Made by a program: the position numbers and the translations under genes
The notes under the pieces: model-generated
The model's database searches: none
Told to the model about the DNA's origin: nothing
Seen by the model: the letters and a program-made list of their open reading frames with translations, nothing else
DNA from: Thecamonas trahens ATCC 50062
Taxonomy: Eukaryota; Protista; Apusomonadida
Direction of reading: 5' to 3'
NCBI RefSeq assembly: GCF_000142905.1
Contig: NW_013657658.1
Coordinates: 372,001-436,000, forward strand
DNA: 64,000 nucleotides
Part shown: positions 22,801 through 64,000 of the stretch, piece by piece
Numbering within the stretch: the stretch's first letter is position 1
Layout of the letters: each line of letters begins with the position of its first letter

Positions 22801-23635
22801 TCTGCAGACAATCCTGCTGTTGTACCTGCCTCTGATGTACGCGGCGCTGCGGTACTTTGACTGCACCGATGTCGGCGGTGGGATCGTGGTGATGACGACC
22901 AACCCTCAGCGGCGGTGCTACACAAGCGCGTGGTACGGGCTGCTCCCGTTGATTGTGACTGTGGCGGCTGTGTACGGGCTCTCGATTCCTGCGGGGCTGG
23001 CGGTCTTCCTCCGGCGCCAGGCTGCAGCGCTGGATGAGGTGACGTTCAGCAGCCGGTACGCGTTCCTTGTGGCCAAGTACAAGGCGGAGCTGTATTGGTA
23101 TGAGCTGGCGATCATGGGGCGGAAGCTCGTGGTGGTGGTGGCGGTCTGCGCTTTTGCATCGCCGGTGGTCAAGGCCAGCGTGGTAGCGCTTGTGCTGTTT
23201 GTGGTTGCCATGGCCGGGATGGTCGGCAACCACAAACCATACACTGCCGAGTACCACAACCAGCTGGAGACGTTCACCTTGGCGTGCAGCATTGCGGTGC
23301 TCTGGTTCGGAACCATCGATTCTGTTCCGCTTCTTCGCGACATGATTGTCGTTGCTGCGCTTTTGGTGCTTGTGGTTGGCCTTGCTGTGGCCGTAGGGTA
23401 CGAGGTGTCGCAGATCCGTGCCCACGATAAGGCGGAGGTTGAGGCCGTATTTGCAGAGCATGGTGTGCGCGAGTTTGAGGTCTGCGACAACGTCTCGGAC
23501 TTTGAAATGCGGACGTTTTCCACGAATGCTCAGCTTGGCATGGGTCAGGAGGAAGGCGAGGAGGTCATGCCCTCGACGCTCGCCATTGTTGACGACGAGC
23601 CGCTGTCGTTAATGACCTCGGTGTCGAGCGTGTAG
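19805..23635 (+). CDS. Cell-surface multi-pass receptor-like protein: signal peptide, 3 sushi/CCP, extensin-like SPPP stalk, 2 filamin/Ig-like, GCC2/GCC3 Cys-rich, multi-TM domain
   Basis: Hydrophobic N-terminus; CCP patterns (ITITCSGG..LCEAGGW, CTFECLNG..ECLGSSMWSAPAPFC); filamin-like GSYTLAVKIGGEDIVGSPFVV; CSAGTFS..CSICPEFTTS; CAAGYRGRLCAQCSSGYY; TM region with RYAFLVAKYKAELYWYELAIMGRK. Confidence 0.85.
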   Translation: MPCPRLPCSVRPWCLSLAFVVFFSVAFSDAAPPLYERSFDNGVDGRVQDNGSGDTSAPGAVVSLKESFLALRVIDIPSSSTGLYFASSRTKIGFKGLHEADDAATMRMTAYDSNEYRGEALLETPWSDNDGLNALPLSSLSWEYSHPGGEVSEFDINDERKAGFSKFVTDVLNSDGFSGALLFRLELTTAPDHSYLLELGNGDSFFSLEFWPVCGEYPSVPSGTLSTSGVTSSTSHIVGDSITITCSGGLMLYGGSTANTVLCEAGGWAALPPAVKCAPPPPPPPPPSPPPSPPPPSPPPPSPPPSPPPPSPPPPSPPPSPPPSPPPSPPPPSPPPPSPPPPSPPPPSPPPPPSPPPPSPPPPSPPPSPPPPPSPPPPYACELIQPPPNGTISFSDYGYAGSVAVTTCIDGTDFVAGDAVRTCTGLTWTGLPAVCVRVACPGLAPPAFGSVSCTNGSSTATPGIFGEICTFECLNGLTKVGADALECLGSSMWSAPAPFCSAVNVSQSTGAPIGMPLKITAGDTWELRVSLRDSEGNAAGSGNDLPLAVVRGGDGANAVAETTYISTGEYSARVAVPTTVGSYMYDIGANGELFTRGVTNVAVEVVPGAPDGRSSTLVDLPTSGVLQIETSATTEYNVVVTDEFGNVLTQALAASEVSIALQRGADTFAVTGVELGPGSIKFGIVVVEGGSYTLAVKIGGEDIVGSPFVVSASATCVPGTRVIDGVRCTSCSAGTFSETVNAVACSICPEFTTSPEQSSSFLNCTCLPTFWFGTGERVRGKRCELCPVGAICAGGTTPPRAAPGHEPSDDGQAFVTCPQPAACMGDGKCAAGYRGRLCAQCSSGYYRLGDVCRECKGSNVAIIVVLVVLVFAYVTGVVWINTRNTKVYGYAAFVIALNTLQAVAIYGTIQLDWHPVAEAIFDAVSMVNLNLDLASPECGLDVGDVWMFKWGMTMALPVLFLLPFVVVTAILCVVFNFRESKSAMFAANGRVVGAAGRGYLQTILLLYLPLMYAALRYFDCTDVGGGIVVMTTNPQRRCYTSAWYGLLPLIVTVAAVYGLSIPAGLAVFLRRQAAALDEVTFSSRYAFLVAKYKAELYWYELAIMGRKLVVVVAVCAFASPVVKASVVALVLFVVAMAGMVGNHKPYTAEYHNQLETFTLACSIAVLWFGTIDSVPLLRDMIVVAALLVLVVGLAVAVGYEVSQIRAHDKAEVEAVFAEHGVREFEVCDNVSDFEMRTFSTNAQLGMGQEEGEEVMPSTLAIVDDEPLSLMTSVSSV
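20639..20937 (+). repeat. CCG-rich coding repeat encoding (Ser-Pro3-5)n
   Basis: About 100 codons of SPPP(P) units. Confidence 0.92.
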
Positions 23636-30929: not shown

Positions 30930-33900
30930 TCAGTCCAGCCGCGAGTCAATCGAGACGATCGACGCCGACGACAACTGTGCCGTGTTGTCGGTGGTCTCGT
31001 CGGCGGTCTCGTCGACGGTGGCGGTCGAGTACACGGTCGTGTCTTGGTCTCGCCCGCCGCCGGCGACGGCGCGGGCATGATGGCTGCGCGAGATGGCCGA
31101 GCTGGCCGACGTTGACCACGGATCCGAGTCGTTTGCGGTGTCAACGAGCGCCGAGGTCTGGTCTGACGATGACGACGCTGACGAGCTGCCGACGTGCCGC
31201 ACTGCAGCACGCTCGGCTTCGCTCCGCGAGCCAACTGACGACATGGTCGAGTGCAGATGGCCGACGCGATTGGCAAGTGCGGCGCCCGACGATACTGAGT
31301 CCGAGTCCGATCCCGAGTCCGAGCAGGCACCGCGGCCAAGCTGGCCGTGCCCGCGGTGGATCTCCGACCGCGAGTCGGCCGATGCAGTCGACGACCAGGC
31401 GTGTGAGTCCGAGCTCGAGCCCGAGCCCGAGCCCGAGCCCGAGCTGGTGTCGTCGATGTTGCGTCGAGCCCGGCCGGCACTCATGTTGCGCGACCAGCGC
31501 GGGAGGCCCTTGCCAACCTCGGACTCTCGCGACATGATCGATGTCACCGAGGCTGAGACCGAGGCCGAGCTCTCTGGATCGTCAGCTTCGGTTGTTCCTG
31601 ACGGCGCAGGCGCAACCGCGGGTGAGGTGGCGTTCTTGCCGGCGACTGTCCCAACACCGGCACCCGAAGCCGAGTCTGAGCTCGAGGCCGAGGCCGAGTC
31701 TGAGCTCGAGGCCGAGGTCGAGCTGGCACTGCTACCGCTCGAGCTTTCGGCGCTGCTCGACTCGAGTGCGCTCGTCCTGCTCGAGCTGTAGTCGATACTT
31801 GACATGGACTCGCTGATGCGGAGGCCTGAGGCCGAGCCAGCGACGTACCAGTGCGGCTTGCGCTCGCCGGCCATCTCTTCGAGGAGGAACTCGGCCTCGA
31901 CTTCGTCGAGAGCGCCGGCAAACTTGGCGAGCACGTCGACGTCCGAGTGGTACGACGAGTAGCCTTCGTCATCGGCCCGACGCAGGGCCTTCTTGATGGC
32001 AGCGAGCTTTGCGGCTGCAAACTCGCGGAAGGTGAGGTCCGAGAGCTTGAGCGCGCGGCGGAGGACGCCGATGTAGACAAAGACAAAGAAGCCGATGAAC
32101 GACATGATAACAAACGACTGGATGAAGAACACGTCCTCGGTCTCCGACTCGGGCTCGCCGAGAGCGGCGAGGAGGGTGAGGACGAGCAGCGAGAAGAGCT
32201 CCAGCCGGTTTGACGCCGTGTCCACAAACGGCATGTACACCATGTGGATAATAACAAGGAACGAGCACGCGATCATGAGCACCAGCTGGCGGTTCTGGCC
32301 ATCCTGGAAGAACGCCACGTACAGCGCAGTCATCAGCGTTCGTCGACCGATGACGACGGCCTCGAAAAAGTAGGCCGACGGCCGGTAGGCGCCAAAGAGC
32401 GCACCGAAGCGGCGGGTGACAACGGCGTCGCGGAGGCCGTTGGCCTCGAGCGGCCGCAGCGGGTCGCGGATCCGGTTGCGGTAGTACCGCAGCAGGCCGG
32501 CGAGCATCGGCGGGAGCGGGAGGACAAGCAGCACAATAATGACAATGGCGAGAACCATCGGCACAATGTGCGCGCCACGGTAGCACGGCACGTCCGGCGC
32601 CACCTGCAGCCGCTGCTCGCCGTCGACTTGGAAGCAGTTGAGGAGCTGCAGCGAGGTCTTGGCCAGCGTCGAGTACGAAAAGCCGGCAATGGCTAGCGCG
32701 CCCGCCACGTACATGTCCAGCCGCATCCGCTTAAAGTACTTGACGCCGGCGATCCGGAGCACTAGGTGGACGAGCAAGTTGGCACCGAGGAGTGCAAAGA
32801 GGACAAGCGGAATGACCAGGCTCGCCATCTGCTTCTCCAGCGGGGAGAGCGGGGCCAGACACGACGACGACGACGAGTTCTCGTCCGGCTCGCCCACCAC
32901 CAGCCGCTCGAGCACCTCGGGCGAGAGGAGAAGGACCGAGAAAATGTTGAAGAACGGCGAGATGGGCCCGATGAGGAGTGGGCACGTCTGCGCCATGTAC
33001 AGCACAATCTTGATGAGTCCACCGCCCTTGCCGGGCTTCTTGGCTAGGGTCATGATGACAAAGGCCTGCGCAGGCAGGAGCAGCAGCATGATGAGCGGCC
33101 AGTTGTACCCGTCGCACTTGACGCACTTGTTGGAGACCAGGAAGAAGCCCTCGGCGCAGTCGGCACAGAGCACGCCGGCTCGGTTGCGCCCACAGACCCG
33201 GGCCGAGCCGGCGGCGCAAAAGCCGAGCCCCGACGGGGTCGGACAGCACGCGCCCGGAATGCCGCAGCGCTTAAAGACCGGGACCTCTTCGTTCGGGTCG
33301 GTGATCTCGTAGAAGCCCGGCGTCGAGCCTACGTCGTCACCACCGGCGCAGAGGCCACCGATCGGGCACGGCAAGCAGGTGATACTGCCTGCCCGCCGGT
33401 TAAAGGTTCCGTACGGACAGCGGATGCAGATGATAAAGCCGGCAATGTCGCGGTCGACGATAAAGCCTGGCCCGCACGTGCTCCGCACCGTCTCGTTGAC
33501 CAGCGTCGTCGTCTCGGGAATCGAGGTCCACTGCAGCGTGTACGGCTGCGAGAGGTCGAGTACCTTGAGGAGCAAGTTCTCAAAGGTGGCGAGGCCCTCG
33601 ATGACCGGCACCGAGACCGTGCCCTGCAGAACGGCTGGCGGAGTGCCGAGGCCCTCAAACTCCGAGTAGGTGCCGTCGCCGTCAAAGTCAAAGACGACCT
33701 TGATGATGACCTGGATTGGCCGGTCGCCTTCGGTTGTCCGCGTCACGGTGTTCTCAAAGTAGTCCTGCAGCGCAATGACCGACCCGAACCGCTCGTTGGC
33801 TTCCTTCAGCTGCGGCCACTGCGAGATCATCGACATCTTGGAGACAACAGAGGCCTGGACCGGACCGTAACCTTCGGCCACGTTGCCGGTGTAGGAGCAC

Positions 33901-36900
33901 TCGACGCACCACGGGTCGACCACCGGGAAGGCTGACTCAAAGTAGACGCAGCCGCCAGCGATGTCCACCGAGTTGGAGTCGAACCGGCCTTCGGTGACCA
34001 GCGCCGCCGACGGGCCGGTCGAGTTGGGCAGAAAGTAGATGGCACCGCCAAAGGCGGCCACGTTGTCGCGGAACTCGGTGCCACCGCTCACTGCAATTTG
34101 GCCCGGGTTCGACGCAGTCGTCAGGGCGCCGCCGTTGTTGCCCTTGTTTGAGGCGAACACGCCGCCGACGACCGAGGTTGAGCAGAGCGAGTACACTCCG
34201 CCACCGTCCGAGGCCTGGCACGACTCGATTGTCGCGCCCTCTAGCCGGATCTGCCCGCCCGAATGCCGGCAGTAGATGCCTGCGCCCTGGCCGGCCACAA
34301 AGTGGTCGGCGATGCGGGTGCCGCGGACCACAAGCAAAGAGTCGAACCGCATGTACACGCCGCCGCCGTCGAGCGCGTCGTTGCGCGAAACGACGCCGCG
34401 TTCGATGACCACAGTCCCGCCCTGGTCGATTGACACCGCACCGCCGCCCTGGTCGAGCGTCTGCCGCGCCGAGTTGAGGGTGAGGAGCGAGTCGACAATG
34501 CTGACGGACGAGGTCGAGGTGGCATAGACCGCGCCGCCGGTGTCGGCCACGTTCCGAGTCAGCGTCGTCCGCACAATTTCCACCGTCGACGAGATGGTGG
34601 CGAAAACAACGCCGCCTTGTCCGGCGTCGTCGACCGAGTTGGCCTCGATGACGCAGTCCAGAATGTGGACGCCCGACGCGCCAAACGAGTAGGTGACGCC
34701 ACCGGCTTCGGCTGTGTTTCGCGAGAGCCGCAGTACGCTCTGCAGCGTGACCTGGCCGGCGTCCTTGGTGTACACCACGCCGCCAAAGGCGCCGACGTTG
34801 TCGACAATCTCGCCGCCGACCACAAAGGCGTGGCCGCTCTGGTCCGACGAGACGACGCCACCCTGCGGCGCCGAGTTGAGCCGGAAGACGCAGTCCTCCA
34901 GCCGCGGGCTCGCGGTCCGTGACGTGGCCACCACGCCGCCGAGGTCGCCTCCGACGTTGCTCTCGAACAGCGAGTTGGTCACCTTGAGCACTGAGCTTCC
35001 ACCGGCAAAGAGCGCGCCGCCGACCTGGGCCGAGTTGACGAGGAAGACCGAGTCGGTGACCAGGTTTGTGCCGACGATCGAGGCCCGCGCCGAGATGGCG
35101 CCGCCGATGGAGAGCGCCCGGTTGGAGGCGAACCTGCACCGCGACCAGCGAGTGTTGGCGTAGCGGAGCGAGACCGCACCGCCTTCGCCGGCCACATTGC
35201 GCTCAAAGGCACAAGAGGTGAAGAGGACTGTCGGCAGGTTGTCACCTGCCAGGGCCTCGGCCGTGGCTGCCCGCGACGCCGATGGCGGTGTGTCGTCGAC
35301 CATCACCGCGGCGCCGACCACCACCGTGTTGATGTCGGTGACGTTGAGCCGGGTAAACTCGACGCCTGTGCTGTCACGGACGTAGACCGCCGGCCGCTCA
35401 CCGCCGGTCACCTGGGTCACGATCAGGTCGTGGATGCTCGCACCAGTGGAGGAACTCACACTCAGCGAGCCCTCCAGGTTACCGGAGAGGACCGAGTGTG
35501 CGAGAACAAAGTCAAACGAGGACTCGATGTGGACGGCAGCGAGCGCGGCCGTGTTGCCGGTCACGCTCACATTGACCACCTGGAGCCGGCGCGAGTTGAG
35601 CGTGGAGAAGAGCGCCGAGCCCGAACCGGCGATGGCGGTGTTGCCCTCAAGCACACAGTTCGAGATGGTGACATCGGTGACCTGCTCAAACGCCATGCCG
35701 CCGCCGTTGTTGGCGGCCGAGTTGCGGAGCGCGGTGACGTCGTGGACACTGACGTTGGAGCAGCCCGAGAGCTGGAGGCCGGCGCCGGTCGACGGGAGGA
35801 CAGCCACCAAGTTGTCCTCGGCAGTGACCCGGAGAATGCTCGCCGACACCACGCTCTGCCAAAAGACGCCACCACCGGACGCACCCGAGTTGCCGCGGAG
35901 GATCACATCGGTGACATGAAGATCTTCGTCGCGCTCAGCGTAGAGCGCGCCGCCGCGTGCAGTGTCAGGCGAGACGACGGCGTTGGCCTCAAAGAGCGAG
36001 TTGGAAAAGTGCGTTGAGCGCCCGTTAAAGGTGTACATGCACCCGCCAGAGCGGGCGACGTTCCTGGAGTAGACCGAGTCCTTGAAGGTCGAGTTGTGCA
36101 GTGTCTCGCCAAAGAGGCAGCCGCCAAACTGCGAGGCACGGTTGGCGTTAAAGGTGGCGTCAGCAAGGGAGATCTGCGAGGCGTAGGCAGCGATGCCGCC
36201 GCCGACCCCGCCGGCCGAGTTGGCCACAAAGGCCGAGTCGGAGCCGTCAAAGACCGAGCTGGTCATCCACAGGCCGCCGCCGTTGGTCACGGCGGCGTTG
36301 GCCGAAAAGTTGGACCACCTCAGCGTGAGCTTCGAGTCCTCCATGTACACACCGCCACCGAGCGTTGTCGCGGTGTTGGCCTCGACGGTCGAGTTGAGGA
36401 GGAGGGACTCGGCGGAGCGGATGGTGACACCTGCTGCACGCTGGGCGATGTTCCGCGAGAGCGTACACGAGACAAAGGTCGAGACGGCGCCAGCGATGGT
36501 CGACACCGCCCCGCCGTCCTGCCCGGCGCTGTTTCCGCTCACCACCGAGTCCTCGAACCGGACCTGGGCCTGGGTCTCGAAGCTTAGCGCGCCGCCGTTG
36601 GCCAACGCTACGTTGTCTTCGACGGTGACTGCGGTAAAGACGGCAAACGACTTGCCGGCGACCACGACAGCGCCGCCCGATCCAGCGCGTGCGGTGTTGG
36701 CGGTGAGCTGACTGCGGAGTACCACCAGGGCGCGGCCGTTCACAAAGATGCCGCCAGCGCCGTCGGCGGTGTTGCCGGTCATGGTGACCGCGTCGAGCTC
36801 GACGTCGGTGACGTTGAAGGCCATGATGGCACCGCCGAGGCCGGTGGCCGCCTCGTTGCCCGAGAGAACGGTGCGGAGGACACGGGCGTTGCTCGACGAG

Positions 36901-39900
36901 TTAAGGAAGACCGCACCGCCGTGGTAGCCAGCAGAGTTGCCGTCAAAGACAAGGTCGACCAGCTGCGAGTAAATCATGCCGAGGGCCGAGACGGCGCCAC
37001 CGCGATCGCCGGCCGAGTTGCCGACAAAGATTGAGCGCGACATGTTGAGCGAGCCGTCGACGACGTGGAGGCCACCGCCCGAGGCGCCGGCCTTGTTGTA
37101 CTCGATCCTGGTGTCGTCGAGGACAAGGTTGGAGCCGGTGGCGACGACGATGCCGCCGCCGCTGCCGGCCACCGCGGTGTTGTTGGCAAAGGTGGAGAAG
37201 GGGAACTCGGCGATGCCTGCGTCCGAGACGTACGCGCCGCCGCCGTCGATGAGACCGACGTTGAGGACGACGGTGGTGCGGACAAGGATTGGATGAGCCT
37301 CGTCTGAGATGCCGAAGCCGCCGCCGTACGCCGCCGTGTTCCGTGCGAGCACCGCATCCTGGACTACCGGGTCCGATCCGCCGGTGAGCACAATGCCGCC
37401 ACCGATGCCGATGGCGGTGTTGGCCTCGACAACCGTGGCCACCAGCTGGGTCTCAGCCTCGTCGTAGTAGAGGCCACCACCCGAGGCCGCTGCGATGTTG
37501 TCGCGGATGACCGAAAAGCCAAGGACCGACGCAGTCGAGTTGAGCGCGTACACCCCACCACCGGCGTGGGCCGAGTTGCCGGCGATAATTGTGGTGTTGA
37601 GCGCGGTGTAGACATCGGTGGCGAGGAAGACACCGCCGCCGCTCGCGCTGGCAGTGTTGAGCGTGACCTCAGAGTCGAGAACGACCAGGCGCGACGAGAC
37701 GACGTGGACGCCGCCACCGCTGCCGGCCGCGGCGCCGTTCCGAGTGACGACCGAGGCGTGGACGGCAACGACTGAGATGCGGCCGACAAGCCCACCGCCG
37801 TAGGTTGCAGCGGTGTTGCCAATGACCGAAACGTCGCTCAGCGAGAGATAGCCGTCGTCGACGATACCTCCACCGCCATAGCTCGCAGCAGCGTTGCCGA
37901 CAATCTGCGACGAGACAAGGACAACCGAGGCGTTGGTCTCGGCCATAAAGCCGGCGCCAAAAGCAGACGCGGTGTTGTTGCCGATCTCGACAAGCGAGGC
38001 CGAGAGGACCGACGAGGCGGCGAGGAAGACGCCGCCGCCGGCGACAGCCGCGTTGGCCGCAACCACGTTCCGCCCGCTCAGCACCGGAGCACTGGCGCTC
38101 AGCAGTGCCCAGCCGCCACCGTTCAGCTCCGCCGAGTTGCCCGAGGTAGTCAAGTCGACAAAGACAGCCGCCGAGCCGAAACCGGCAAAGCCGCCACCGT
38201 AGCCCGACGCATTGTTGCTGGCGATGAGGGTGCGCTCTACCCGGGGCGACGAGGCGTTGGCGTAGAGCCCACCGCCGTCACCGCTAACTACGTTTGTCCG
38301 CACGATCGAGTCGGCAAAGGTGGCAACAACGTCGGCGGCAACGTAGGCTCCGCCGCCCGAGCCGGCGGCGACAGCGTTGGCCTCCAGCGTCGAGCGAGAG
38401 ACATGGTAGCTGCCCGCCACACCCGAGGCGAGGAACGCGCCGCCGCCGCTCATATAAGCGGCGTTGGCAGCGAGGTGCGAGTCGAGCATGTCCAGCGTCG
38501 ACGAGATGGCGTACAGACCGCCGCCCGAGCCGGCGACCGCCAGGTTGTGGGTGGCGGTCAGGTTGGTGCCCCGAAGAGTGCGCTCGCAGCATATAGACCG
38601 CCGCCCGAGTCTAGCGCGGTGTTGGCATCGAGGCTACTGGCATCGACGGTCACTACCACAGCAGAGTCGCGGAACGCCAGACCACCGCCGGAGAGGGCCA
38701 CATTGGCGTCGACAGTGCAGCCGACAAGAGTGTACGGAGCAGGGCCTGCCGAGAAATGGGCGCCGCCGCCAAAGCCGACCCGGGCCTCGTTGGCTCGGAG
38801 GGTGGTCGAGATGACCATCGGCAGAGCGTCGTCGACCGCGAGGCCGCCGCCTGAGCCGGTCACCGCCGTGTTGCTCTCAAGGCGCGAGTTGGCGACGCGC
38901 ACCACACCGGGGCCACTGACCTGCAGCCCGCCACCGGAGCGACCGGCCACGTTGTGCCAGGCCCGGAGCGTGCGGAAAGAGCCATCGAGAGAGGCGCCGG
39001 TCGCGATGCCACCGCCGCCGTCAAGCGCGGCAGAGTTGTTGGCGAGCAGTAGATCAGCACCGTCAAGAGTGCCATTGGCGACAAAGATGCCTCCGGCCGA
39101 CGCGGCGAGTGCGTCGTTGCCGAGGGCGACAAGGTGGCGGATAACCGAGGCAGACCGGACGGCACAAATGCCACCGCCGTTGCCGACGTTGGCGACGTTG
39201 AAGCCGACGATGGTCTCGTCCCAAACTCCGACCGGCCCGCCCACGTTGCCGTCGACGAGTGATGCGGCCTCGACGGCAGCCAGCGCGTTGGGCGACGCAC
39301 CGTGAAGCGCAGCAGAGAGTTCATCTGCGAGGAGGGCACGAGTAGCGAGGCCGGAGGCGTCGGGCAGGGCATGGAGCTCGAGGACGCTGTCGACGACCTC
39401 CAGGCCGCCGCAGGCATCGCGGCCCAGGTTGCCCCACAGGTAGGAGCCGTTGACAACAGCCTTGGCGCCATCGACGGCGACACCCGCGCCGAGAGACGCG
39501 TTGTTGCCGACAGCGATGGAGCCAACGAGCTCAACAAGCGCACCCGAGTCGGCGTAGACGCCACCACCAGAGCCACCAGCGTCGGTCACAACGTTGGAGG
39601 AGACGATCGAGGACCTGAGGAGGGTCGAGGCCGAGCTGACGACAGCAATACCGGCGCCTCGGGTGGCGGCTGTGTTGGCCGCCACCCGTGAGGTGTGGAC
39701 TTCAAGCACCGCCGAGGCCTCGCACATGACGCCACCGCCACGGGCGCCACCAGTGTTGGAAACGATGGAAGCGGCGATGATGCGCGAGACCGAGAGCGAG
39801 GAGAGGAAGACGCCGCCACCCTCGGAGCCAGCGGCATTGTCGTGGAGCTCGACCGAGTCCATGACCAGCTCGCCGCCGTCGCGGAGGTAGATGCCGCCGC

Positions 39901-48900: not shown

Positions 48901-51900
48901 GGGCGGCACAGCGCGAAAAGCGCGAAGCATGGAGCTCCAGCCGCGATCCGGCTCCCGAGACCGCGGCACCGCCTCCCGCACCAGCGCCGGAAACGGTGTT
49001 GTGGACAAAGCTGGCGTTGGTGGCAAGGGCAAGGCCGCCGGCACCGACGCCGAGGCCAGCACCGAACACATCAGACGACGAGGCCGATGCGGAGCTCACA
49101 AGCACGTTACCCACCACTGTGCAATGGGTCATGTTGGCGCTTGCAGCCGATGAGTTGACACCGACGCCGGCACCGAAAGCAGTGGCGACGCCGAGGATGT
49201 CGGCGGCGATGATGTTGTCGGCGACGGTGACGCCGCTCAGCTCAAGGGCACCGGCGACAATGCCGATGCCCGCGCCGTAGGCGGCCGGAGGCGCGCCAGC
49301 GCACGGCAGGCCGTTTGCATCGCCGATCCACGAGCCACGCCATGCGCCGCCATAGGCGGCCAGGCTGCCATCGACGACGCCCGAACCGCCGCCCCACTCG
49401 CAGGCGGCAGACTCGGAAATGGTTGCGCCGTAGAGGTCGACGCGAGTGGCAGACGACGAGACGCCGATGCCACCACCAAACGAGGCTGCGGTGCAGTGAG
49501 AGAGCTCCACGCCGACAGCGAGGACATGGCAGCCGTCATCGACGGCCAGACCACCACCAAAGCTTGCGTCGGCGACTGAGTGGAGGACTCGGGTGAGCCG
49601 GAGCTGAAGAGTGGTGCCTGGCGCGGCACAGCCGATACCGCCACCGTGGGCGGCAGTACATGCGTGGACGACACCAGAAGAAGTGCCGATGGCGGCGGTA
49701 GCGGAAGCGTAGAGGCCACCTCCGCGGCCGACTGGGCCGAGCAGAACGAGATGTTCGAGGCGGCGGTCATGTTGAGGACGGCGCCGGCGCCAGCGGCGTA
49801 GAGACCGCCCCCGTTGCCGACACTTGCCGAGCAGCGTGTGACAGCGACCGAGTCGAGCTCGACCAACGAGTTGTTGAGAGCGGCAAAGCCGCCACCGCCA
49901 GCAGCGGTGGCCACACAGTCCGAGATGAGCGAGTCGAGCGCCAAGACGCGGCCGCCCGAGGTGGCGACTGCACCACCGCCGGTCTCGGCCACACACTCGG
50001 TGAGTGAACTGCCGCGTATCTCGAGGATGCCGCCTGCTTCGGCGGCGACGCATCCGCCCAGCGGTGCCGTCGTGCGCGAGACGGCCAGGCCATCGACGAC
50101 GACCGACGATCCAGTCGAGGCCACCAGGCCGCCACCCACAATGACAGCGGTCGCATCGGCACAAGTCGAGTCGGCGAGGACAATCGACGAGGCGCCGTAG
50201 CCAAAGCCGGCGCATCCTCCCGACGCCGCCGATCCGCGAAGAAGTTGCGAGCGGGTGACCGAAACAGCGGCAAAGCTGCCGTAGAGGCAGCCGCCGAGAC
50301 CGCCGCGGGCGTGGTTGTCCTCGCAACGTGAGTTGACCATAATTAGGGTTGCCGGAGTGCCAGCCGAGCCGACAGCAGCAAGACCGCCACCGCCGCGCCC
50401 GGCGGCGAGCGTCTCGCTCACGTTGTTGCGGGCGATGATGGCGGACGAGAGACTGAGCGTACCGCCAGGCCCCACAGCCGCGCCGCCGCCGGTGGAGGAA
50501 GCAACGCACATGGCAATGGTAGAGTTGCCCGTGACGTTAAAGGAGCAACCTGACGCACACCAGCTCCCACCACCAGAGACGCCAGCGACGCAGTTGGTGA
50601 CGAGCGAGCTGTCCGAGAGCACGACGGTGGCATCGGTCTCGGCGCCGATTCCGCCTCCGACTGTAGTGGCGTTACAGTCTGCAAGGCGCGAGGCTGCCAG
50701 CGTGAGGGAGGCGCCACCTTCGACCCAGCCGGCAGCACCCGCGTCGGCGCGTGCATTGGTGAGCGCGAGGCCAGTCGCCGACGCCGCCGCCGCGGTCCCG
50801 ATGTAGAGGCCGCCGCCGCGGGCAGCAGCGTCACATCCGGTGACAGTGCCGTTGGCGAGCAGGAGCGAAGCGCCTTGCTCCGCACAACCACAGCCGCCCA
50901 TGGCGGCTGCGGCAGACGCGACGACAAAGCCGTCGGCAAACTCGAGCCGGCCTGCGCGGGAGACGGCAAATGCACCGCCGCAGCCGGAAGCGACCGATGA
51001 GATGATGCGGCCGCCCGAAACGACAGCGAGGCCGTCAACACCATCGACCAAGAGCCCTGCACCAGTCGTTGCCGAGTTGTTGCGGGCAAGGACGGAGGTC
51101 CAGCGGAGGGTTCCGTTGGCGGCGAGGCCGCAGCCAGCGACAACGTTCAACTCACAGACCGAGTCAAGCGCAACGAGCTCCCCAGCATCGACTGCGGCGA
51201 GAGCGCGGCCACCGGAGCGAGAGACAGTCGAGAGCGTCAGCTGGATGCGCGCGCCAACACCAACAGCCTGCGCGCCACCGGCAGTGTTGGCGTCGACAAG
51301 CGATGCGTTGACCAGAATGCTGCCGTTGACGGCAGAGACGAGACCCCACCCGCCGGAGCGGGCCACCAAAGTGGAGCTCTGGAGGTGGGCCACGCCACCG
51401 GAGCGAACCAAGATGCCACTGTCGACGTTGTCGGTGATGGCAGCGGCGAGGCCGAGCCAGACCGCGTCGACACCGTCAACCTGGACGCCAATGCCGTTGC
51501 GGGCGATGGTGGCGTTGTGGACCTGGGCGAGGCCGCCAGCCGCGAGCCGAACGCCGGCAAGAGTTTGGTTCTCGACCCGGGTGCTCGCGTCAGCGATGTA
51601 CACGAGACCGCCCGTGGCGGCGACCAAGCCGGAGCCGGAGGCGCCAGCAACGACGGCGCCATCGAGGAGGTCGATGCGGCCACCGGTCTCGGCGTAGCCA
51701 GCGTCGCCATCGCCATCACGAAGCGCGGTGCCAACATGGTGGACTATGATACGGCCGCCGTCGACAGCGTGGACAGCTACGCCACCGCGGCCGCGCTCAA
51801 CAACGGTTGCGTTCTCGAGGCGAGCGATGGAGCCTGCGCCCGAGACCAGCACACCGTCACCGCCGTCGGTGGCAGTAATGTGCGCGCCGGCGGCGACGGC

Positions 51901-54900: not shown

Positions 54901-57900
54901 CGAGGCGCTACCGCTACTGGCCAAACCGCCACCGGAGCTGGCGCTGCACGAGGTGACGTGCAGCCCGAGGCCATCAAGCCGTGCGCCGTCGCCGACAAAG
55001 GCACAGCCACCTGAACCGGATGCGGTAGCGCCTGAGGCAAGGTGCGCGTCGACGAGCGTGAGCAGAGAAGCACTGCCCGAGACACTGACGACGCCACCGG
55101 CTCCGCCTGCGCTTGCCAGCGTACCGTTGAGCCGAGTAGCTGAAACAGTGGCGTTGACGACAGCGAGTGCGCCGCCGTACGCGGTTGCCGAGCAGTTGAA
55201 GAGCGAGACGTCCGTAAAAACGACCGAGCCCGGAGCGGCAACGTGCGAGACCAGGATAGCACCACCCGAGCCGATGACATGCGCGTTGGAGAACGCAACC
55301 GAGTCGAGGGTGGCGTAGCCAGCGTCGACGACGAGGCCACCACGAGCAACGGTGATCTGGGTGAGGAGGAGCGAGCCATGCGCGAGGGCAGCAAAGGCGC
55401 GGCCGCCCATGTCGGTGACTACCACATCGCAGGAATGGGCGTCAACGACCGAATCGGTTCCAACAACCGCCACGGCTCCCTCGGAGCCGGCGGGGTTTGC
55501 AATGACGACATCGACAAGCTCGAGTCGACCAGCGTCAATGGCGAGCAGAGCATGCCCCGGATCGCTTGCGGAGCAGGCCACGACGCGTGTACCGACAAGG
55601 CGGAGAACCGAGGCCGACCCGCCAACGGCAGCGGCGCCGCCGCCACCACCACTGGTAGCAGTGCTCGACTCGATGGCACCGCCAATGAGAATCAGCGGCG
55701 CCGGCGTCACACCTAGTGATGCCCACACACCGCCGCCAAAGAGCGCGGAGCAGCTGGTGGCGGTGAGGTCAGTGATGTTGGTGGCCGAGCCGGCGAGGGC
55801 GCCTCCACGGACCGCGACAGAGCCGGAGACGTCGAGGGCTGCGATGGAGCCGGCGTAGCCGTCGAGGATGACGACGCCGCCACCCGAGTCTGCGGCGGTG
55901 GTGTTGACAAGAGTGGTGTTGACGAGCGCACCGGATGTATCTGCGAGCGCGATGCCGCCCCCGTGGCGGCCGGCCGACGACGCGACGACGACGAGAGCGT
56001 CGACATTTGCCGCAGCTGCGCCTCCAAGCCACATGCCGCCGCCATCGCCTGCGGTGGCGGTCGAGGATGCGATGCTGAGACCGGTGACGTTAAAGGCGCC
56101 ACCCGAGGCCCACACACCGCCGCCGTTGCCGGCAGCAGTACAGTGGGAGATGGTGGCTCCCGACGAGATGACAGAGGAGATGGAGACGGTGGCAAGCAGC
56201 GCAATGCCACCACCGTTTGTGGAAGCAGAGCAGCCGGTGATGGCCACACCCGAGCCCAGGTCAAAGTCGAGGAGGCCTTCCAGGCTCACGCCGCCACCGT
56301 AGGAGGCGGTCGATTCAGAGATGGTGACGTCGTTAGCAGAGCCGCGAGCGCCGGCAGCGATGGCGAGACCACCGCCGCTACCGGCAGCGGCGGCTCCACC
56401 ACGGATAGCAGCGCCCGAGGTGAGGATGATCGATCCAGCGGCCCAGATGCCGCCGCCATTGCCGGCGGCAACGCAAGACGGGCCGACAACAGCACCGTCG
56501 CGGAGAGTGGCCGAGCCGGAAGCGGAGATGGCGATGCAGCCGCCATGGCCAGCCGAGGCCGACCACGAGATGTTGGCCCCGTGGGCGAGGTCAACGAGCG
56601 CGTTGTCGATCCATATCCCGCCGCCGTCACTTGCGGCATCACCCGAGACAAGCACCGAGCCATTGAGCAAGGCGTATCCACCCGAGGTGACGGCGAGAGC
56701 GCCACCGAGACCGTCACTCACACAGCCACGAAGCGTAGCCGAGGTGAGGAGCAGCGTCGAGCTTTCGCCATCGACGAGGACGCAGCCGCCGGCGCTGGAC
56801 GCGCCGCGGGCGCGGCCGTCGAGCAGCGACGAGCCGCCGGAGACAGTGGCGGCAGCGCCAGCACGCACAGCAAGACAGGCGCCGGCGGCCTCGCCGCCCT
56901 GAACGACCGAGGCGTGAAGGACCACGGTGGCGGACGGACCGTAAGCGAGGATGCCTGCACCGTACGCGACCGGACCGTTGTTCACGATGTACGCACCGCG
57001 GACGTCGGCGGAGCCGTTGACGGCGATGCCCGAGCCGGCGTTGGCCTCGAGGCGGCCGCCGGTCATGATGAGCGAGGCGTTGATGGCGACCTCGATGCCA
57101 TGGAGAGCCGAGCCAGCAATGTAGCCACCAGCGGCGACAGTGACGGTTGCGCCTGGGTTAATGACGAGCCCGCTAGAGGTAGAGCGGATGAGCGCACCTG
57201 CAATGGTGGCATTGGCCGACTCGCCGAGCCAGAGGTTGGTGTGAGCCGAGTCGGCGACCTCGCCGCCATTCCCCAGGACGACAATCGACGCGTTCTCGCC
57301 GCGGATGCCGTAGCGCGCCGAGAAGAGAACGCGGCCGCCGGCGGCGACGGTTGCATCGGCACAGCCGTCGGCGACGAGGCCGTCACGGCCCGAGTCGACA
57401 ACAGCCGCCGAGCCGCGGACGGCGACGGCGGCGGCAGAGTAGCAGACGATGCCGTCACTACCGCTGGCTGTCACGTTGCCGCCGTAGAGCGTGATGCGCC
57501 CGGCGGTCCCAGCCCAGATGCCATGCCGAAGGTTGGCAGCAATGGCGGCGTCGTCGTGCACCTCGAGCGCACCGCTGGCCAGGACGACAACGCCGTCGAG
57601 CCCGTTTCGCGTGATGAAGCTGCTCGGGCCGGCGACAAGTGTGGGCGTGCCGGAGGGACCTTCGACCACCAGCCCGTTGCGGGCATTGGCTTCGATGGTG
57701 CCCGCGGTCATGTTGAGGAGCGCACCGACGCCGACAACGTAGAGTCCGTCGCCAGTAGCGCCAGAAACACGGCCGCCAGCCAAGTCAAAGACACTGACAA
57801 GACCAGCGGTGCCATCGACGGTGACAGCGGCGCCGCGGACGGATCCAGACGAGGCCGAGACGCTGCCGAGTAGGCCGAGGACGGCGCGCCCGCCGCGGAC

Positions 57901-60900
57901 GGCGACGCCACCACCCAGACCCCCAGCAGTGGCGTTGGTGAGCGCAGAGTTGATGACTGCATAGCCGTCGGGACCGACGGCCACACTTCCGCCGTCGGCG
58001 CCGGCGACGTTGGCGTGGATGGCAGCACTACCGGACGAGCCAAAGGTGGCGTCGGCGATAAAGACGGCACCGCCATGTCGGCCGGCAGTGTTGGCCGTGA
58101 CCGAAGCAGAGGCTTGGACGGATATCGCGCCACGGCCGATGGCGCAAAGGCCGCCGCCGTCCTGTCCGGCGGTGTTGGTCTCGATCGCGACCGAGTCGGT
58201 AACGAGCACGGCACCGGCGGCAAGGACTGCGATGCCGCCGCCGTCGGCGGTTGCGGAGCAGTTGGTGACCAGAGCGTTGTCGCGGAGCTCAAGCATGCCA
58301 CCGGCAGCGGCGACCGCGAGGCACCCACCACTGGCGGCAGAGCAGTGAGCGACAACGACGTCAGTGCCGAGGACAATGAGGCCCGAGGCCGCCGCGAGGC
58401 CGCCTCCAGCCACCGCAGCCGACGAGTGAGTGACTGTTGATGAGACCAGCTCCATTCTCTGGCCAGCTTCGGTCGAGGCGTTGGCCCAGAGGCCACCACC
58501 AGCACCGTTGCTGGAACAGTGAGTGACAAGCGAGTGCGAGAGGCTGACGAGGCCTGGCCCGTTCTGGGCCACTCCACCGCCACCCAGACCGGCGGAACAT
58601 GCCGAGATGTTGGTGGCGGCAGCGACCGAGATCGAGGCACCAGAGTCAGCGTAGAGTCCACCGCCATGGCCTCCAGCCGAGCAGGAGACCACGGTGGCGC
58701 TGACGAGCTCAATGAGCGCCGACGAGCCAGAAGCAGCACCGCCACCACCGACAGTGGCAGAGCAGGCAGTTATGGTGCCGTTAAAGGCGACGGAGCCGCC
58801 GGCGGCGGCAAAGAGGCCACCACCGGTGCTCGAGGCGGAGCACGACTCGATGCGGGTCGACGAGGGTGCCAAGATGGAGCCGGAGGTACTGGCACCGATG
58901 CCGCCGCCGCGGACAGCCGAGCAAGCATCGATGGCGCCTGCGACGTTGATGATACCGGATGACTGAGCCCAGGCGGCGCCTCCGGCGTCCGAGGCATGGC
59001 AGTTTGTGACGCGGGTTGTCGCGACGAGGTGGACGACGCCAGCGTCCGTGGCGCCGGCACCACCGCCGCGCGCGGCAGAGCAGTCTGAGATGACGACGCC
59101 AGCTGCGAGATGGACAGAGCCGGTAGATGCGGCGGCGACGCCACCGCCGAGGCCAGTTGCAGCAGAGCAGTTGTGGACAGGTCCAACAGAGAGAACGACC
59201 GAGGCGGACAGTTCAGCGTAGGCTCCGCCGCCGGCATACACGGCCACGTTGGCTTCCAGCGATGCGTCCGGATGACCGGCAAGCCACAGCAGGGTCGAGC
59301 CCGAGCCCGAGGCATAGAGACCGCCGCCATAGTCTGCGACATTCCGGATGACACGAGTGGCGTTGGTGGCGCGGACGAGACCACCGCTGAGGGCCTGCAG
59401 ACCGGAGCCGGCGTTGTCCATGATCCACGACGAGCCTCGGAGCTCGACCGAGGCGCCATCGGCGGCGACGATGCCGCCACCGGCGACCGAGTCGCGGACG
59501 ACGACGTCGACGAGGACGACTGAGGCGGCATTGCCTGCGGCGAGGCCTGCGCCGGCGGTGGCGTTGTTGGCGGCAAAGGTGAGCGCGGTGGCGTTGAGCT
59601 CGCCGGCAACGTAGACGCCGCCGCCGAACGACGCGTTGCGGGCCTCGTTGGCAGAAAAGGTCATGTGAGTCATGACGACGGCTGCACCTGGGGCGATGAC
59701 CAGCCCGCCGCCGTGGCTCTCACTCACGCAACGGGTGATGGTGAAGCCACTGACGTCCTCGCGGCCAACAAGGGTGAGGAACGGACCATCGGCACCAGTA
59801 CAGTCGACGACAACGTCGGCGACGTCTGGCTCGACGGAGCGGAGGACAACGTCCAGGCTTGCTGGCGATGAGAGACGAGCATTGCGCGGGCCCGAGTAGG
59901 AGCCAGCTCTGGCAAAGATGCGATGGTGCTCAAAGTATGCGTTAGCGAGCGCGCAGCCAAAGGAGGCACAGCCCGGCGACGAGGGCGAGTAGGGCGGCGA
60001 CTGGTTGCAGACGCACGAGCCGTCCTCTGAGCCGGCAGCGGCGTCGACCCAGATCGGCTCGACAAATTTGAAGATACAGTCTGCGGCGGCATCGTCAATG
60101 CACTCACTGGTGGCAGCGAGGCCGTTGACGTCGACGACGGTGACGACGACCGGGTGCGACGCGTTGCCGCCGGCGACGTCGCACAGGATATGGGTCTCGT
60201 TGGCCGAGGCGACGATGCACGGGTGCGGGCCGAGGTCAACGGTGGTGTTGACAGGGGCGGCAGAGAAGCCCCGCCCGGCGATGGTGAGGCGGGTGGTGAG
60301 GTCGTAGAGTGCGGCGCGTGGCTGGATGGAGTGAATCTCGGGGACACGTGCGAGGCCGCAACCAGAAGGGTTGATGCACTCGGCGGTGATGCCCTGGACG
60401 ATGACGATGACGCTGCCGACGACAATGGTGGCATCGGCCTGCGGCGGAAGGCAGACGAGCGTCGTGGCGTTCGCCTCTTGCACGGGGCACGGCACGCCGC
60501 CGAGCCAGGCCTCGAGCTCGGAGAGCGGGGCATCAAAGCCGGCGCCGTCGACCACAACGACCACACCCGGGCCGGAGCCAACCGGGACGCGGGCGGTGAC
60601 GCTTGCGATCTCGGGCACGACGGTGATGTTGCAGGCGAGCGAGGTGTTGCAGACCCAGGGAAGCGAGTCCATGCCGCCGGCGAGAACGTACTCACCGCCG
60701 GTCACATAGCGGGTGGCGGCAACGAGGACGGCGATTGAGTCGGCGCCATCACGGAGGTCCCAGGCGACGCCGCCGACGGAGACCAGGGTCGGCACATCGG
60801 TGAGGTTGGCGGCAAAGCCGTAGCCTGCAAGGGTGACGTTGTCGCGACCAGAGGCGTAGACACGGGACGGCGCGACTGACGAGACGGTCGGGTGCGCGTT

Positions 60901-63900
60901 AAAGCCACACCCCAAGGCCGAGGCGTCGCACACGTACGGGCGGCCATGGGTCTCAAGCTGTAGGGTGCGGACGCGGGCGAGGCCCGGTGGAGTAAGACAG
61001 AGCAGAGAGGTAAAGTTGACCGAGATGATAGCGCACGACAGGTTGGGGCGAGGACGACCGAGTGGCGGCTTGGATCGCTGGCAAAGCCGGTGCCGCGGAT
61101 GTCGATGGTGACACCGCCCGAAGCGAGGCCGACAGCCGGAGTCATGGATGTGACGCGGGCGAGGACCTCGTAGCTGCAGACCCCGGGAGGGCAGGCCCAG
61201 GTGGCGTTGCGACCGGTGATGCGGACATCGTACGCGCCAGCCACGGCGGCGTCCGGCACGCAGGTGAGGTGGGTAAAGTTGGCGGCAGCGACGATGCAGG
61301 CGACCGATTCGGGCCCAGGGCCGCCGAGGAGGTCAAACCAGACTGCAAAGTCGGGTGCAAAGCCGCGGCCGGTAAAGACGACCGGGTCGCCGCCGGGCGC
61401 CTCGCCGACGCGCGGGGCCTGGGCATCGACGACGAGCGCGATGGTGAGGTTGCAGCCACCGGGGCAGGCGTCGACGGCGGCGATGCCATGGACCTCGACC
61501 GCAACCATGTAGTGGCCAGCTGGCCACTGGGGGTGACGCAGCTTGCGTTGACGAGCGAGGACGGGGGCGCGAGCGGCAGACAGGCGACAGCGTCTACAGC
61601 GGCAACACCGCCACTCGAGTCGAGGCCGTGGAAGGCAAACGCGTTCGGAGAGACGAGCGTGGGGTCAAAGCCGGTGCCGAGGAGTGTGACCAGTTCGCCG
61701 CCGGCCGGGTCGATGGCGGCCGGCGTGACAGCCGTGAGCGAGGGAACGACAACAAAGGCACAAGCGGCGTCCGAGACGCAGCGCGCGGGGTAGTCGGCGG
61801 CGACAACGACCGAGGCGTTGGTGGCGACACCGCGGGCCGGAGGCCGGATGCAGACGATGGTGGTCTCGTTGGCAGAGACGAGGCTGCACGGCAGCCCGTC
61901 GAGGCTCACGGCGTTGTCGCCGACGGAAGGGACAAAGCCGGCGCCGTCGACGACCAGCGCGTCCGAGCCTACAGCGGGCCCAGAGACCGGCAGCAGTTTG
62001 TCGACGAGAGCGACGACAACGATGGTGCAGTCGGCGCCGACTGAACACTCGGCCTCGGCGCCGACTAGGTTCATGTAGACCTTGACGACATAGTGGCCGA
62101 CGACCAGGGGCGGCGAGGTGCAGTTGAGCTGAGTCTCAGAGGCGGCGACAACGGTGCAGTTGCCGGTGGCCGACGGGACAGCGGCAGCGGCCGGACCAGC
62201 CAGCGGCTCGAATGCGACATAGGCGACACCGGAGCCGGAAGCGCCAAAGCCGCGACCAGTGATGCGGACGAGCTCGCCGGCGCGGACACCGACGTCGGCC
62301 GGAGCAACGTCGTCGATGACAGCCACTGCGGTCCAGGTGACTGGCAGCGCGGCGGGGGTGAGGTAGGCAAAGGGCGGCGCGTTTGTAGCCGGCAGCGAGA
62401 CCGAGACGTTGTAGACGGCCGGCTCGACGGTCCCGACAATGTCGCAGGTGAGGGCGCCGAGGGTGATGTCGCTCGTGTTGGCGACGACGCACGAGACGTT
62501 GGCCAGAGTGTTGGCGTGTGGGACCAGCCAGATCTCGACGCCTGGTGCAAAGCCATGGCCGGCGAGCGAGAGTGTGAGGTTGGCGTTGGCAGACGAGATG
62601 GCAGGGACAACGCTCGCGACGCCGCCGATGCGCTGGTAGCTACAGGCTGGAGTGATGGCGCACGGAACGCGCGTGCCGCCGTTCCACATCTGCAGCTCGA
62701 AAACGCCTGCGCGGCCGGGCGGGACGATGCAGGAGACTTCGTCTGGCGAGGCGTTGCCGTATCCGTCGAGGGCGGAAAAAGCAAGGTAGTCAACGGCGAC
62801 GACGCAACGGGAAGCGTTGCCGACCACCCGCACTTCTAGCAGCTCACCACCTGTGACGAGCACTGAGCTTGCGGTGGCGAGAAGGTTAGCGGTGTCGAGC
62901 CAGGCGCCGGCAAAGTCGGCACTGAGGACGACGTTGCCGCCGATGGCCAGGCTGACGCTGCAGCTTGCGTCAGTCTCATTGCCTGCGGCGGTGACCGAGT
63001 AGCCGAAGGAGATGTTGTGGGTGCCGTAGTAGAGGTCGGCGTCGAGGTACTCGGACCATGCGGCGTCGGCGACGAGGATGTTGTCTGCGTACGAGGTGTT
63101 GCGGACAGTGGCGGAAGAGGCTGCGGTCGGGAGCGGAGCGCATACCTCGCCGTCGATAACAATCTGCGACCGCGGGCCCGAGGTCATGAGCGGCTGGAGG
63201 CCGTCGCCATGGACAACAAGGGTGTTGCCGCCCGAGGCAGGCGCGGCTTGAGGCAGGAGCGCGGTGATGTTGTGGGTAAAGTCAAAGACGGCGGCGGACG
63301 AGTCAACGACAAAGCTGAGCGCGTCGGGCCAGGAGACGGCGAGGTTGAGCGGGCCCGAGTTGGGAAGCCCTGGGCCAACAACGACACACTGCATCGGGCC
63401 GGTGAGGCCTCCCGAGACAACCGGGCGACAGGTGAGCGAGCCAAGAGCAATGACCACGTCTGCGTAGGCCGCCGACGAGATGTTTGTCGGCCAGCCGATG
63501 CCGTCGAGGGTGACGAGAGTGCCGACACCGCCAGAGGAGGGAGTGAGGGCCGAGATGGCACCCGAGTACACAAAATCGCAGGAGGCGGCGTTGCAAGTTG
63601 CGGCGGCGCCGTAAGCGACGGTGAGTGAGACGCCCGAAAACGGGCCGGCCTGGTGGTGAGCGAGCTCGCACTCGAGGGTGGTGGCTGCCGAGGCGATGAC
63701 GGTGCACGGCAGGCCGTGGGCGACGACCGCCAGCTCGGAAATGACAGGTGAAAAGCCTGAGCCAACGAGGGTGAGGATCGCGCCGCCTGCCGACGATCCG
63801 ACTTGCGGGATGATCGAGTCAATGCGCGGGAGGGTGACAAAGGCACATGCGTAGCTCGAGGAGACGTTGCAGGTGGCGTTGGCGCCAAATGCCGCGCCGT

Positions 63901-64000
63901 GACCAAAGGCCTGGACCTCTACGGCCCGCACACGGCCGTCGAGGCCGGGTGGGAGAGTGACGTTGAGGGAGGCGTCAGCGGTGGCGGTGATGACGAGGTT
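30930..64000 (-). CDS. Giant (>11,000 aa) surface protein: IPT/TIG repeats, polymorphic-membrane-protein-like right-handed beta-helix (GGG/GGA repeats), Cys-rich linker, multi-TM domain, Ser-rich tail; 5'-partial; four -1 shifts
   Basis: Five consecutive minus-strand ORFs join by single-base additions at 61529-61533, 61045-61048, 49734-49736 and 38569-38572. 33071+4 nt = 11025 codons, and the frame is open at 64000. IPT motifs (PRIDSIIPQVGSSAGGAILTLVGSGF) at ~60070-64000; beta-helix at ~33900-59870; Cys-rich at ~33110-33480; TM at ~32050-33100. Confidence 0.88.

Follow-up and report, generated by a model that had tools for sequence, protein, structure and literature searches.

A putative giant Thecamonas trahens gene coupling a TIG and beta-helix ectodomain to a TRP-like membrane domain

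Described systems and the new locus

In Chlamydomonas, the protein MST3 joins an extracellular mastigoneme filament to a PKD2-like membrane domain (PMC11015965), and this arrangement is the nearest precedent in design for the gene described here. We analyzed a stretch of 64,000 nucleotides (nt) from Thecamonas trahens ATCC 50062 (contig NW_013657658.1, positions 372,001 to 436,000 of the forward strand; hereafter, the window). Positions 30930-64000 of the window are read as the 3′ three quarters of one giant gene on the minus strand, an explanation that, taken as a whole, we consider probable. The gene spans about 402,930-447,464 of the contig (which we call C22), and its predicted product leads from an array of TIG domains through a very long beta-helix to a multi-pass membrane domain with a cytoplasmic tail. 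A preliminary description of the window had proposed such a protein and likened it to fibrocystin and to chlamydial adhesins.

MST3 and polycystin-1 share with the giant protein a long filament or immunoglobulin (Ig)-rich ectodomain that sits covalently on a TRP-related domain (PMC11015965, PMC7265326), and in a Foldseek comparison the mastigoneme protein Mst1 was nearest to the juxtamembrane Ig/Cys-rich part of the giant. However, MST3 and polycystin-1 carry true PKD2-fold domains, whereas the giant gave no such fold match. Unlike systems of this type, it also lacks visible hydroxyproline-rich helices and GAIN/GPS or REJ modules.

A second comparison is with Flc proteins and Schizosaccharomyces pombe Pkd2 (PF06011), which resemble the giant in having a large N-terminal ectodomain on the outside and a long cytoplasmic tail, and whose membrane-domain profile the giant matches at the edge of the threshold. 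S. pombe Pkd2 carries the Pfam TRP-like domain (PMC6727746) and, when reconstituted, is permeable to Ca2+ upon membrane stretch (PMC9727806), a conductance known in this family for that protein only. The Pkd2 ectodomain is ML-like and a few hundred residues long, whereas the giant has 13,900 unrelated residues in this place, and only the central third of the family profile was matched.

Fibrocystin (PKHD1) and PKHD1L1 likewise present a TIG array followed by a parallel beta-helix in a very large glycosylated ectodomain, and fibrocystin is associated with polycystin biology. Fibrocystin contains G8 domains followed by PbH1 repeats, with homology to TMEM2, as well as PA14 and SEA domains (PMC13424714). 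None of G8, PA14, and SEA gave a Pfam match at E ≤ 0.01 in any piece of the giant. Fibrocystin also has a single-pass type I (or glycosylphosphatidylinositol) anchor and about ten PbH1 repeats, in contrast to the nine helices and the 8,500-residue beta-helix found here. The layout common to both, as proposed in the preliminary description, is thus real, but membership in the fibrocystin family fails on the missing domains and the multi-pass anchor.

The likeness to chlamydial Pmp adhesins lies in coils that measure about 27 residues and turn at Gly-Gly-x-hydrophobic and hydrophobic-x-x-Asn motifs. The specific GGA(I/L/V)/FxxN signature that had been cited as typical of this family did not hold: the giant has GGG rather than GGA turns (162 GGG[ILVFMA] vs 33 GGA[ILV]), and Phe occupies only 28 of its 185 [ILVF]xxN turns. 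There was no match to PF02415 in the giant at E ≤ 0.01 and no NCBIfam match, and the protein is a eukaryotic membrane protein with no autotransporter barrel. What remains of the earlier interpretation is a single, almost intronless giant gene with the layout that it described, and not membership in either family.

Open frames, frame breaks, and the 5′ end

The window has a G+C content of 64-69%. Its minus strand contains five long stop-to-stop open stretches, running from position 64000 down to 30933:

64000-61145, minus strand: open stretch 1, codon starts modulo 3 = 1
61664-60705, minus strand: open stretch 2, codon starts modulo 3 = 2
61332-49240, minus strand: open stretch 3, codon starts modulo 3 = 0
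50536-38561, minus strand: open stretch 4, codon starts modulo 3 = 1
38633-30933, minus strand: open stretch 5, codon starts modulo 3 = 2

Each stretch is shifted by +1 relative to the preceding one, and neighbors overlap. Joining all five takes four single-base additions and gives (33,068 nt + 4)/3 = 11,024 codons, so that the five open reading frames (ORFs) and the length originally reported are correct, although they occupy three frames and not the single one claimed. Pfam TIG and Beta_helix matches with E values from 1e-17 to 1e-72 indicate that the ORFs are not chance noise of a GC-rich genome.

We placed the frame switches by tblastn self-homology, comparing the rest of the gene with each junction, and by reading all three frames. 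Self-homology resolved five junctions, and the three at 67.7-68.3 kb were read by eye; in the Gly/Ala-rich repeats, the noise in G+C at third codon positions was too great for locating switches. Coordinates above 64000 are window equivalents (C22 position minus 372000) and come from 20 kb of additional DNA. The breaks are as follows, with the tblastn and three-frame positions in brackets:

61515-61535, minus strand: frame switch 1, modulo 1 to 2, one base missing, probably in the C5 run at 61533 (tblastn ~61.56-61.60 kb; reading ~61524-61533)
61040-61050, minus strand: frame switch 2, modulo 2 to 0, one base missing, C4 run at 61048 (tblastn ~61.03 kb; reading ~61041-61048)
49735-49750, minus strand: frame switch 3, modulo 0 to 1, one base missing, probably in the C3 run at 49736 (tblastn between 49.78 and 49.93 kb; reading ~49736-49747)
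38568-38575, minus strand: frame switch 4, modulo 1 to 2, one base missing, G4 run at 38572 (tblastn ~38.57 kb; reading ~38571)
~66271 (G5), ~67724 (C3), ~68115-68121 (C4/C5), and ~68294 (C3), minus strand: upstream switches, each +1

The protein sequence continues across these sites. At the G4 run at 38572, a beta-helix coil reaches the run and resumes directly after it in the next frame, and a hidden Markov model (HMM) of the coil matched a single coil, positions 1-24, across the 38571 break. A TIG strand likewise resumes directly in the next frame at the C4 run at 61048, where a TIG HMM match (residues 4508-4575) bridges the 61041 break (residue 4546); two further TIG domains bridge upstream breaks, and at switch 3 the coil register is preserved to within a few residues. 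The gene's eight breaks, of which four lie in the window and four upstream, are all of one sign, corresponding to one missing base. At five of the eight, a run of at least four bases lies within the permitted zone (P ~6e-5 from the gene's own density of 3.3 such runs per kb). Over ~14,580 codons there is no other stop, and no stop or opposite-sign indel occurs elsewhere across 43.7 kb. Introns at the breaks were ruled out, as the domains and coils that span them lose no residues and all shifts are of one sign. Separate genes are excluded because the downstream pieces would begin in the middle of a domain.

The same lesion is found elsewhere in this assembly. The gene for the essential CCR4-NOT subunit 1, CNOT1 (window 21-5791, plus strand), is divided into two ORFs, 21-3659 with the CAF1- and TTP-binding domains and 3662-5791 with the Not1 domain; the reading is seamless in the next frame, and the split corresponds to the loss of a single A from an AAA run near 3650. 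The public paralogue AMSG_11742 (KNC46606.1, 1,105 residues) is identical to contig C11 over all 1,105 residues (100%) and stops a few codons past a TTTT run (C11 ~298,775), with its membrane domain continuing in the next frame as a 464-residue ORF. The database entry is, demonstrably, cut short by the same type of break. From these two cases and from the evidence in the giant gene itself, we take its breaks to be, very probably, errors of the assembly and not introns, pseudogene decay, or separate genes.

Two other loci show overlapping frames. At 9371-14922 of the window (plus strand), two ORFs in frames 2 and 1, 9371-13990 and 13765-14922, share 226 nt; the shift agrees in sign with the other breaks, and a missing base may have split one more gene here. 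At C31:233055-254065 (plus strand), overlapping ORFs of 4,015 and 3,112 residues in different frames, with a few TIG matches, probably represent a further gene of ~7,000 residues cut by a single-base error.

The frame was described earlier as still open at position 64000, and the gene indeed runs on for 10.7 kb beyond the window, through the four upstream breaks, to window-equivalent ~74669 or 75464. TIG-bearing frames reach ~74.7 kb, above which lies C-rich and CA-repeat DNA flanking a gap of 315 N. Starting from an ATG at 75464, 28 codons encode a hydrophobic core of a kind typical for signal peptides. A GTACGT donor (75379) closes this short exon, and from a CAG acceptor at 74671-74670 the TIG frame would resume in the correct phase; the proposed intron of ~710 nt is pyrimidine/CA-rich and holds the 315-N gap. 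The gene therefore appears intronless, as first described, only within the window, as it probably begins with a signal-peptide exon and a single 5′ intron. This putative exon is what the upstream extension suggested by the preliminary description had sought. The conceptual product, which carries an X at each break, consists of 14,584 residues from exon 2 plus the 28 codons of exon 1, or ~14,610 residues in total. The assembly gaps around the 5′ end are:

74777-75091 (window-equivalent): 315 N, flanked by CA-repeat/poly-C DNA, within the proposed 5′ intron
77840-78085 (window-equivalent): 246 N, flanked by CA-repeat/poly-C DNA

An upstream ORF with a VWA domain (77791-76023) was considered as the N-terminus and rejected, since it has its own C-terminal anchor and stop and is a separate gene. 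This gene (C22:448023-449791, minus strand) encodes a MIDAS-like DSSGS motif and a C-terminal membrane anchor, and changes frame once, modulo 1 to 2, near window-equivalent 76800. Further upstream, C22:451712-455998 (minus strand) holds a gene of at least 1,400 residues, still open where the additional DNA ends, with an NB-ARC domain and WD40 repeats in an Apaf-1-like layout.

Domain architecture and relatives

Within the window, the giant gene encodes the following features:

60135-64000, minus strand: IPT/TIG array, C-terminal end, with domains 38-48 of 48 complete (11 in all) and another truncated at the window edge
33822-59712, minus strand: right-handed beta-helix, ~8,500 residues, ~300 coils of 27 residues, consensus GGGL...N.A
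57534-56937, minus strand: non-coil insert, a gap in the coil HMM
54222-53751, minus strand: non-coil insert with 8 Cys, a gap in the coil HMM
52830-52374, minus strand: non-coil insert with 11 Cys, a gap in the coil HMM
39496-39178, minus strand: non-coil insert, a gap in the coil HMM
35546-35231, minus strand: non-coil insert, a gap in the coil HMM
33489-33791, minus strand: Ig-like/IPT-like beta-sandwich, with strands at residues 176-276 of the AlphaFold2 (AF2) model and a mean predicted local distance difference test (pLDDT) score of 84
33099-33479, minus strand: Cys-rich stalk, ephrin-receptor-like/TNFR-like, PF07699 at 23.5 bits (cut-off 23.1)
32049-33098, minus strand: predicted nine-helix membrane domain, Flc/Pkd2 "TRP-like" (PF06011), from Pfam, hydropathy, and AF2
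30933-32048, minus strand: cytoplasmic tail, 372 residues, 25% Ser, stop codon at 30930-30932

TIG domains were matched by Pfam in the window pieces (E 5.7e-42 and 1.8e-17), and an HMM that we built from the gene itself found 48 of them in the whole protein at a spacing of ~93 residues. The roughly ten repeats noted earlier thus agree with the 11 complete domains of the window, but fall far short of the array as a whole. The copies have a mean pairwise identity of 24%, which is higher at even lags and suggests a two- or four-domain super-repeat. Since the copies have diverged so far and no tandem repeats are present in the gene at the DNA level, the array is old and not an artefact of assembly.

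The beta-helix occupies residues ~4,990 to ~13,600 and was matched by Pfam Beta_helix (E 1.4e-38, 1.8e-72, and 3.4e-40) and NosD, close to the ~8,600 residues of GG-motif helix first proposed. It contains 177 GG[AG]-hydrophobic turns with a spacing peak at 26-28 residues. The coil HMM found ~270 coils, compared with ~315 expected from the length. They form about six runs, the longest of ~4,300 unbroken residues, separated by inserts of 100-200 residues.

In the AF2 model of the juxtamembrane part, the last coils, which extend to model residue ~165, are followed by the Ig-like sandwich, the Cys-rich stalk, and the first membrane helix. Foldseek matched the sandwich to Ig-like s-type sandwiches (STAT, Runt) and to Mst1, while a GAIN/GPS-type module ahead of the first membrane helix was looked for in the AF2 model, with Foldseek, and with Pfam, and was not found. 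The stalk superimposes on the cysteine-rich domain (CRD) of EphA2 with Z 7.7 and a root-mean-square deviation of 2.0 over 67 residues (22% identity), it was matched by Foldseek to TNFR CRDs, and its Cys columns are invariant across 16 homologues. What had been called a Cys-rich linker is an ephrin-receptor-like stalk.

Hydropathy gives seven strong and two moderate hydrophobic helices, and the AF2 model of the membrane domain (pLDDT 71) has nine, in keeping with the multi-pass domain proposed before. PF06011 scored 30.1 bits (cut-off 28.5) against the 540-residue module alone and 27.1 bits within a 2,567-residue piece, and it matched 4 of the 16 aligned homologues, with a best E of 1.2e-9. By these profile scores, the domain may be assigned to the Flc/Pkd2 family at the edge of the threshold. 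The nine-helix topology puts the ectodomain outside and the tail inside; conserved Cys residues all fall in predicted outer loops, and a conserved RYG..L...Y....YW.E motif falls in a predicted cytosolic loop. The tail, at 372 residues, is somewhat longer than the ~300 first reported, and equally Ser-rich in character. The ectodomain contains 208 N-x-S/T sequons against 89 ± 8 in shuffled sequences, which bears out the earlier remark on their abundance and makes it heavily N-glycosylatable.

The giant has relatives in its own genome. We obtained 73 matches to the Cys-rich and TRP-like module, within open frames of 400-3,750 residues, and the giant is the largest of a T. trahens family of at least 70 loci in which varied ectodomains stand on a shared Cys-rich/TRP-like chassis. 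The family alignment has 12 invariant columns, 10 of them Cys. Ephrin_rec_like and TRP were matched in the giant, and DUF7630, which matches 14 of 16 members, is not listed for it. With AMSG_11742 and other members, the giant has in common the beta-helix, the Ig-like sandwich, the Cys-rich stalk, and the PF06011-type domain at 20-30% identity; it differs in being 4-13 times longer and in its 48 TIG domains and ~300 coils, where the paralogues have propellers, Sushi, Big_5, or short helices. To our knowledge, no member of this family has been studied.

One member is a neighbor of the giant: the gene at 19805-23635 of the window (plus strand; 1,276 residues) has Sushi, Ephrin_rec_like, and DUF7630 domains on the same multi-pass chassis. 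It matches the module of the giant at E 5e-7. Other large TIG-bearing loci of the genome, on contigs C15 (Big_5/Sushi/TIG) and C31 (~7,000 residues, TIG-poor), carry ectodomains of other kinds.

Protein searches were made against a collection of 15 billion sequences that holds other T. trahens proteins. A HMMER search with the 1,101 C-terminal extracellular and membrane residues returned 11,756 matches, all at no more than 33% identity except for two fragments. The two fragments come from a single 5.1-kb contig of a different organism (SRR23274481_20079 from Logan, 53% GC). At positions 75-2249 (plus strand) this contig encodes a homologue that is collinear with the Ig-like/Cys-rich/membrane module at 48-63% identity and is interrupted by gaps of ~35-75 nt resembling short introns; it stops short of the ectodomain. 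The same beta-helix/Ig-like/Cys-rich/TRP-like chassis occurs in Gefionella, Rhodelphis, and Catenaria. The best-scoring matches were bacterial-type Chlam_PMP-repeat proteins, which match the helix only and carry PF02415.

Tests of whether the locus is present in the collection covered the window parts named here, leaving out the N-terminal pieces. In the HMMER scan, no protein of any length covers the 1,101 C-terminal residues. In word-index searches, no protein of 1,412-4,492 residues covers the membrane module and none of 2,217-7,054 residues covers the start of the 4,031-residue piece, with one weak match in each case and no self match. Exact look-ups of six window ORFs, including a 2,519-residue ATG-to-stop ORF, found none of them. 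The locus appears unannotated, and for the parts tested the gene is hidden, as the preliminary description had supposed. A protein atlas returned only unnamed or Ephrin_rec_like/TRP clusters, and our literature search found no report of the gene and no paper that names run SRR23274481. The giant gene is, then, a new and extreme form of a receptor family that has yet to be studied, and it appears to be unannotated.

Possible function and rival explanations

A beta-helix rises 0.48 nm per coil, and a TIG domain is ~4 nm long. By arithmetic from the domain counts, the ectodomain could extend over ~150 + 190 nm (150-350 nm) when fully extended. The rod of 100 nm or more in the preliminary description is a calculated figure of the same kind. 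Apusomonads are gliding bacterivorous biflagellates and are sister to opisthokonts (10.1101/2022.11.09.515670). In such a cell, the long glycosylated ectodomain would touch bacterial prey or the substrate, and the rigid stalk would transmit the load or binding to the membrane domain. This domain, by analogy with its yeast relative Pkd2, may pass Ca2+ under strain, and the Ser-rich tail would serve as a regulatory target. The outcome would be a receptor that serves a gliding bacterivore in tethered adhesion and mechanosensing, a reading that we hold tentatively: the domain order and topology are results, from which we infer surface location, contact, force transfer, adhesion, and mechanosensing. 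A bolder version, in which a fibrocystin-like ectodomain fused to a Pkd2/Flc-type domain makes a self-contained, tether-gated mechanosensory Ca2+ channel used in gliding or prey contact, seems improbable to us. Were it right, the halves that animals keep apart as fibrocystin and the polycystins would be naturally fused here, in the lineage sister to opisthokonts, and the ~14,600 residues would place the protein among the largest known in any eukaryote.

Several points weigh against the gene model and the tethered sensor. At the DNA level, three of the eight break sites have only a three-base run, of a kind common here (27 per kb); the missing bases are deduced from the assembled sequence and not directly seen; and the start codon and 5′ intron, read from sequence signals alone, lie across the 315-N gap. 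For the membrane domain, PF06011 covers only positions 228-357 of 426 (130 positions) and exceeds its cut-off only with the module alone. When the AF2 model of this domain (pLDDT 71) was compared with solved structures by Foldseek and VIA-align, only generic helical bundles were returned, and no solved TRP/PKD2 channel or other membrane fold was matched. PF06011 proteins are themselves only candidate TRP-fold channels. Lastly, the length estimate presumes a fully extended chain.

Some of these points would fit a single gene with a passive product, that is, a surface coat or adhesin whose rod is structural glycocalyx or glue and whose multi-pass domain is a mere anchor or sorting module. Giant repetitive Ig-like/beta-helix proteins are typically adhesins, the 208 sequons suit a coat, and the partial PF06011 coverage and the failure to match a solved channel fold leave room for a simple anchor; Flc proteins, moreover, have been described as flavin carriers and Ca2+ homeostasis factors and are not proven channels (PMC9600462). 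We nevertheless regard a passive coat as unlikely, because the nine helices, the loop Cys residues, and the cytosolic motif are kept across at least 70 paralogues and distant eukaryotes, which exceeds the needs of an anchor. The yeast relative is also stretch-activated (PMC9727806), and the long Ser-rich tail suggests regulation.

It is also conceivable that the beta-helix is catalytic or carbohydrate-binding, acting as a surface polysaccharide lyase, hydrolase, or lectin on prey or matrix. Beta_helix and NosD matches belong to the pectin-lyase-like fold, and there is an analogy with the G8-PbH1 regions of TMEM2 and fibrocystin (PMC13424714). Against this stand the ~300 uniform, Pmp-like coils, the lack of G8 and of any recognizable active-site insert, and the fact that the nearest relatives in sequence are Chlam_PMP-repeat proteins, which are adhesins; such an activity is thus very unlikely.

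Genuine frameshifts, in a decaying pseudogene or between several separately expressed proteins, would account for breaks that are present in the assembly as given and for a locus covered by no public protein, but are scarcely credible beside eight one-sign indels with zero stops or opposite-sign indels in 43.7 kb, domains that cross the breaks, downstream pieces that would start in mid-domain without a signal peptide, the same lesion in CNOT1 and in a paralogue, and a C-terminal module conserved in another organism.

T. trahens provides the reference apusomonad genome, and studies that date the emergence of adhesion and signaling machinery draw on it. The giant gene, the largest of this genome, is apparently absent from the public proteome, and homopolymer errors of the same kind also cut CNOT1 and at least one paralogue, so that comparative studies based on this proteome under-count and truncate a large receptor family. 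In practice, the assembly needs polishing before its gene models can be trusted. As a natural extreme in which a TRP-like membrane domain bears a long, stiff ectodomain, the gene makes the idea of tether-gated sensing testable in a simple gliding cell.

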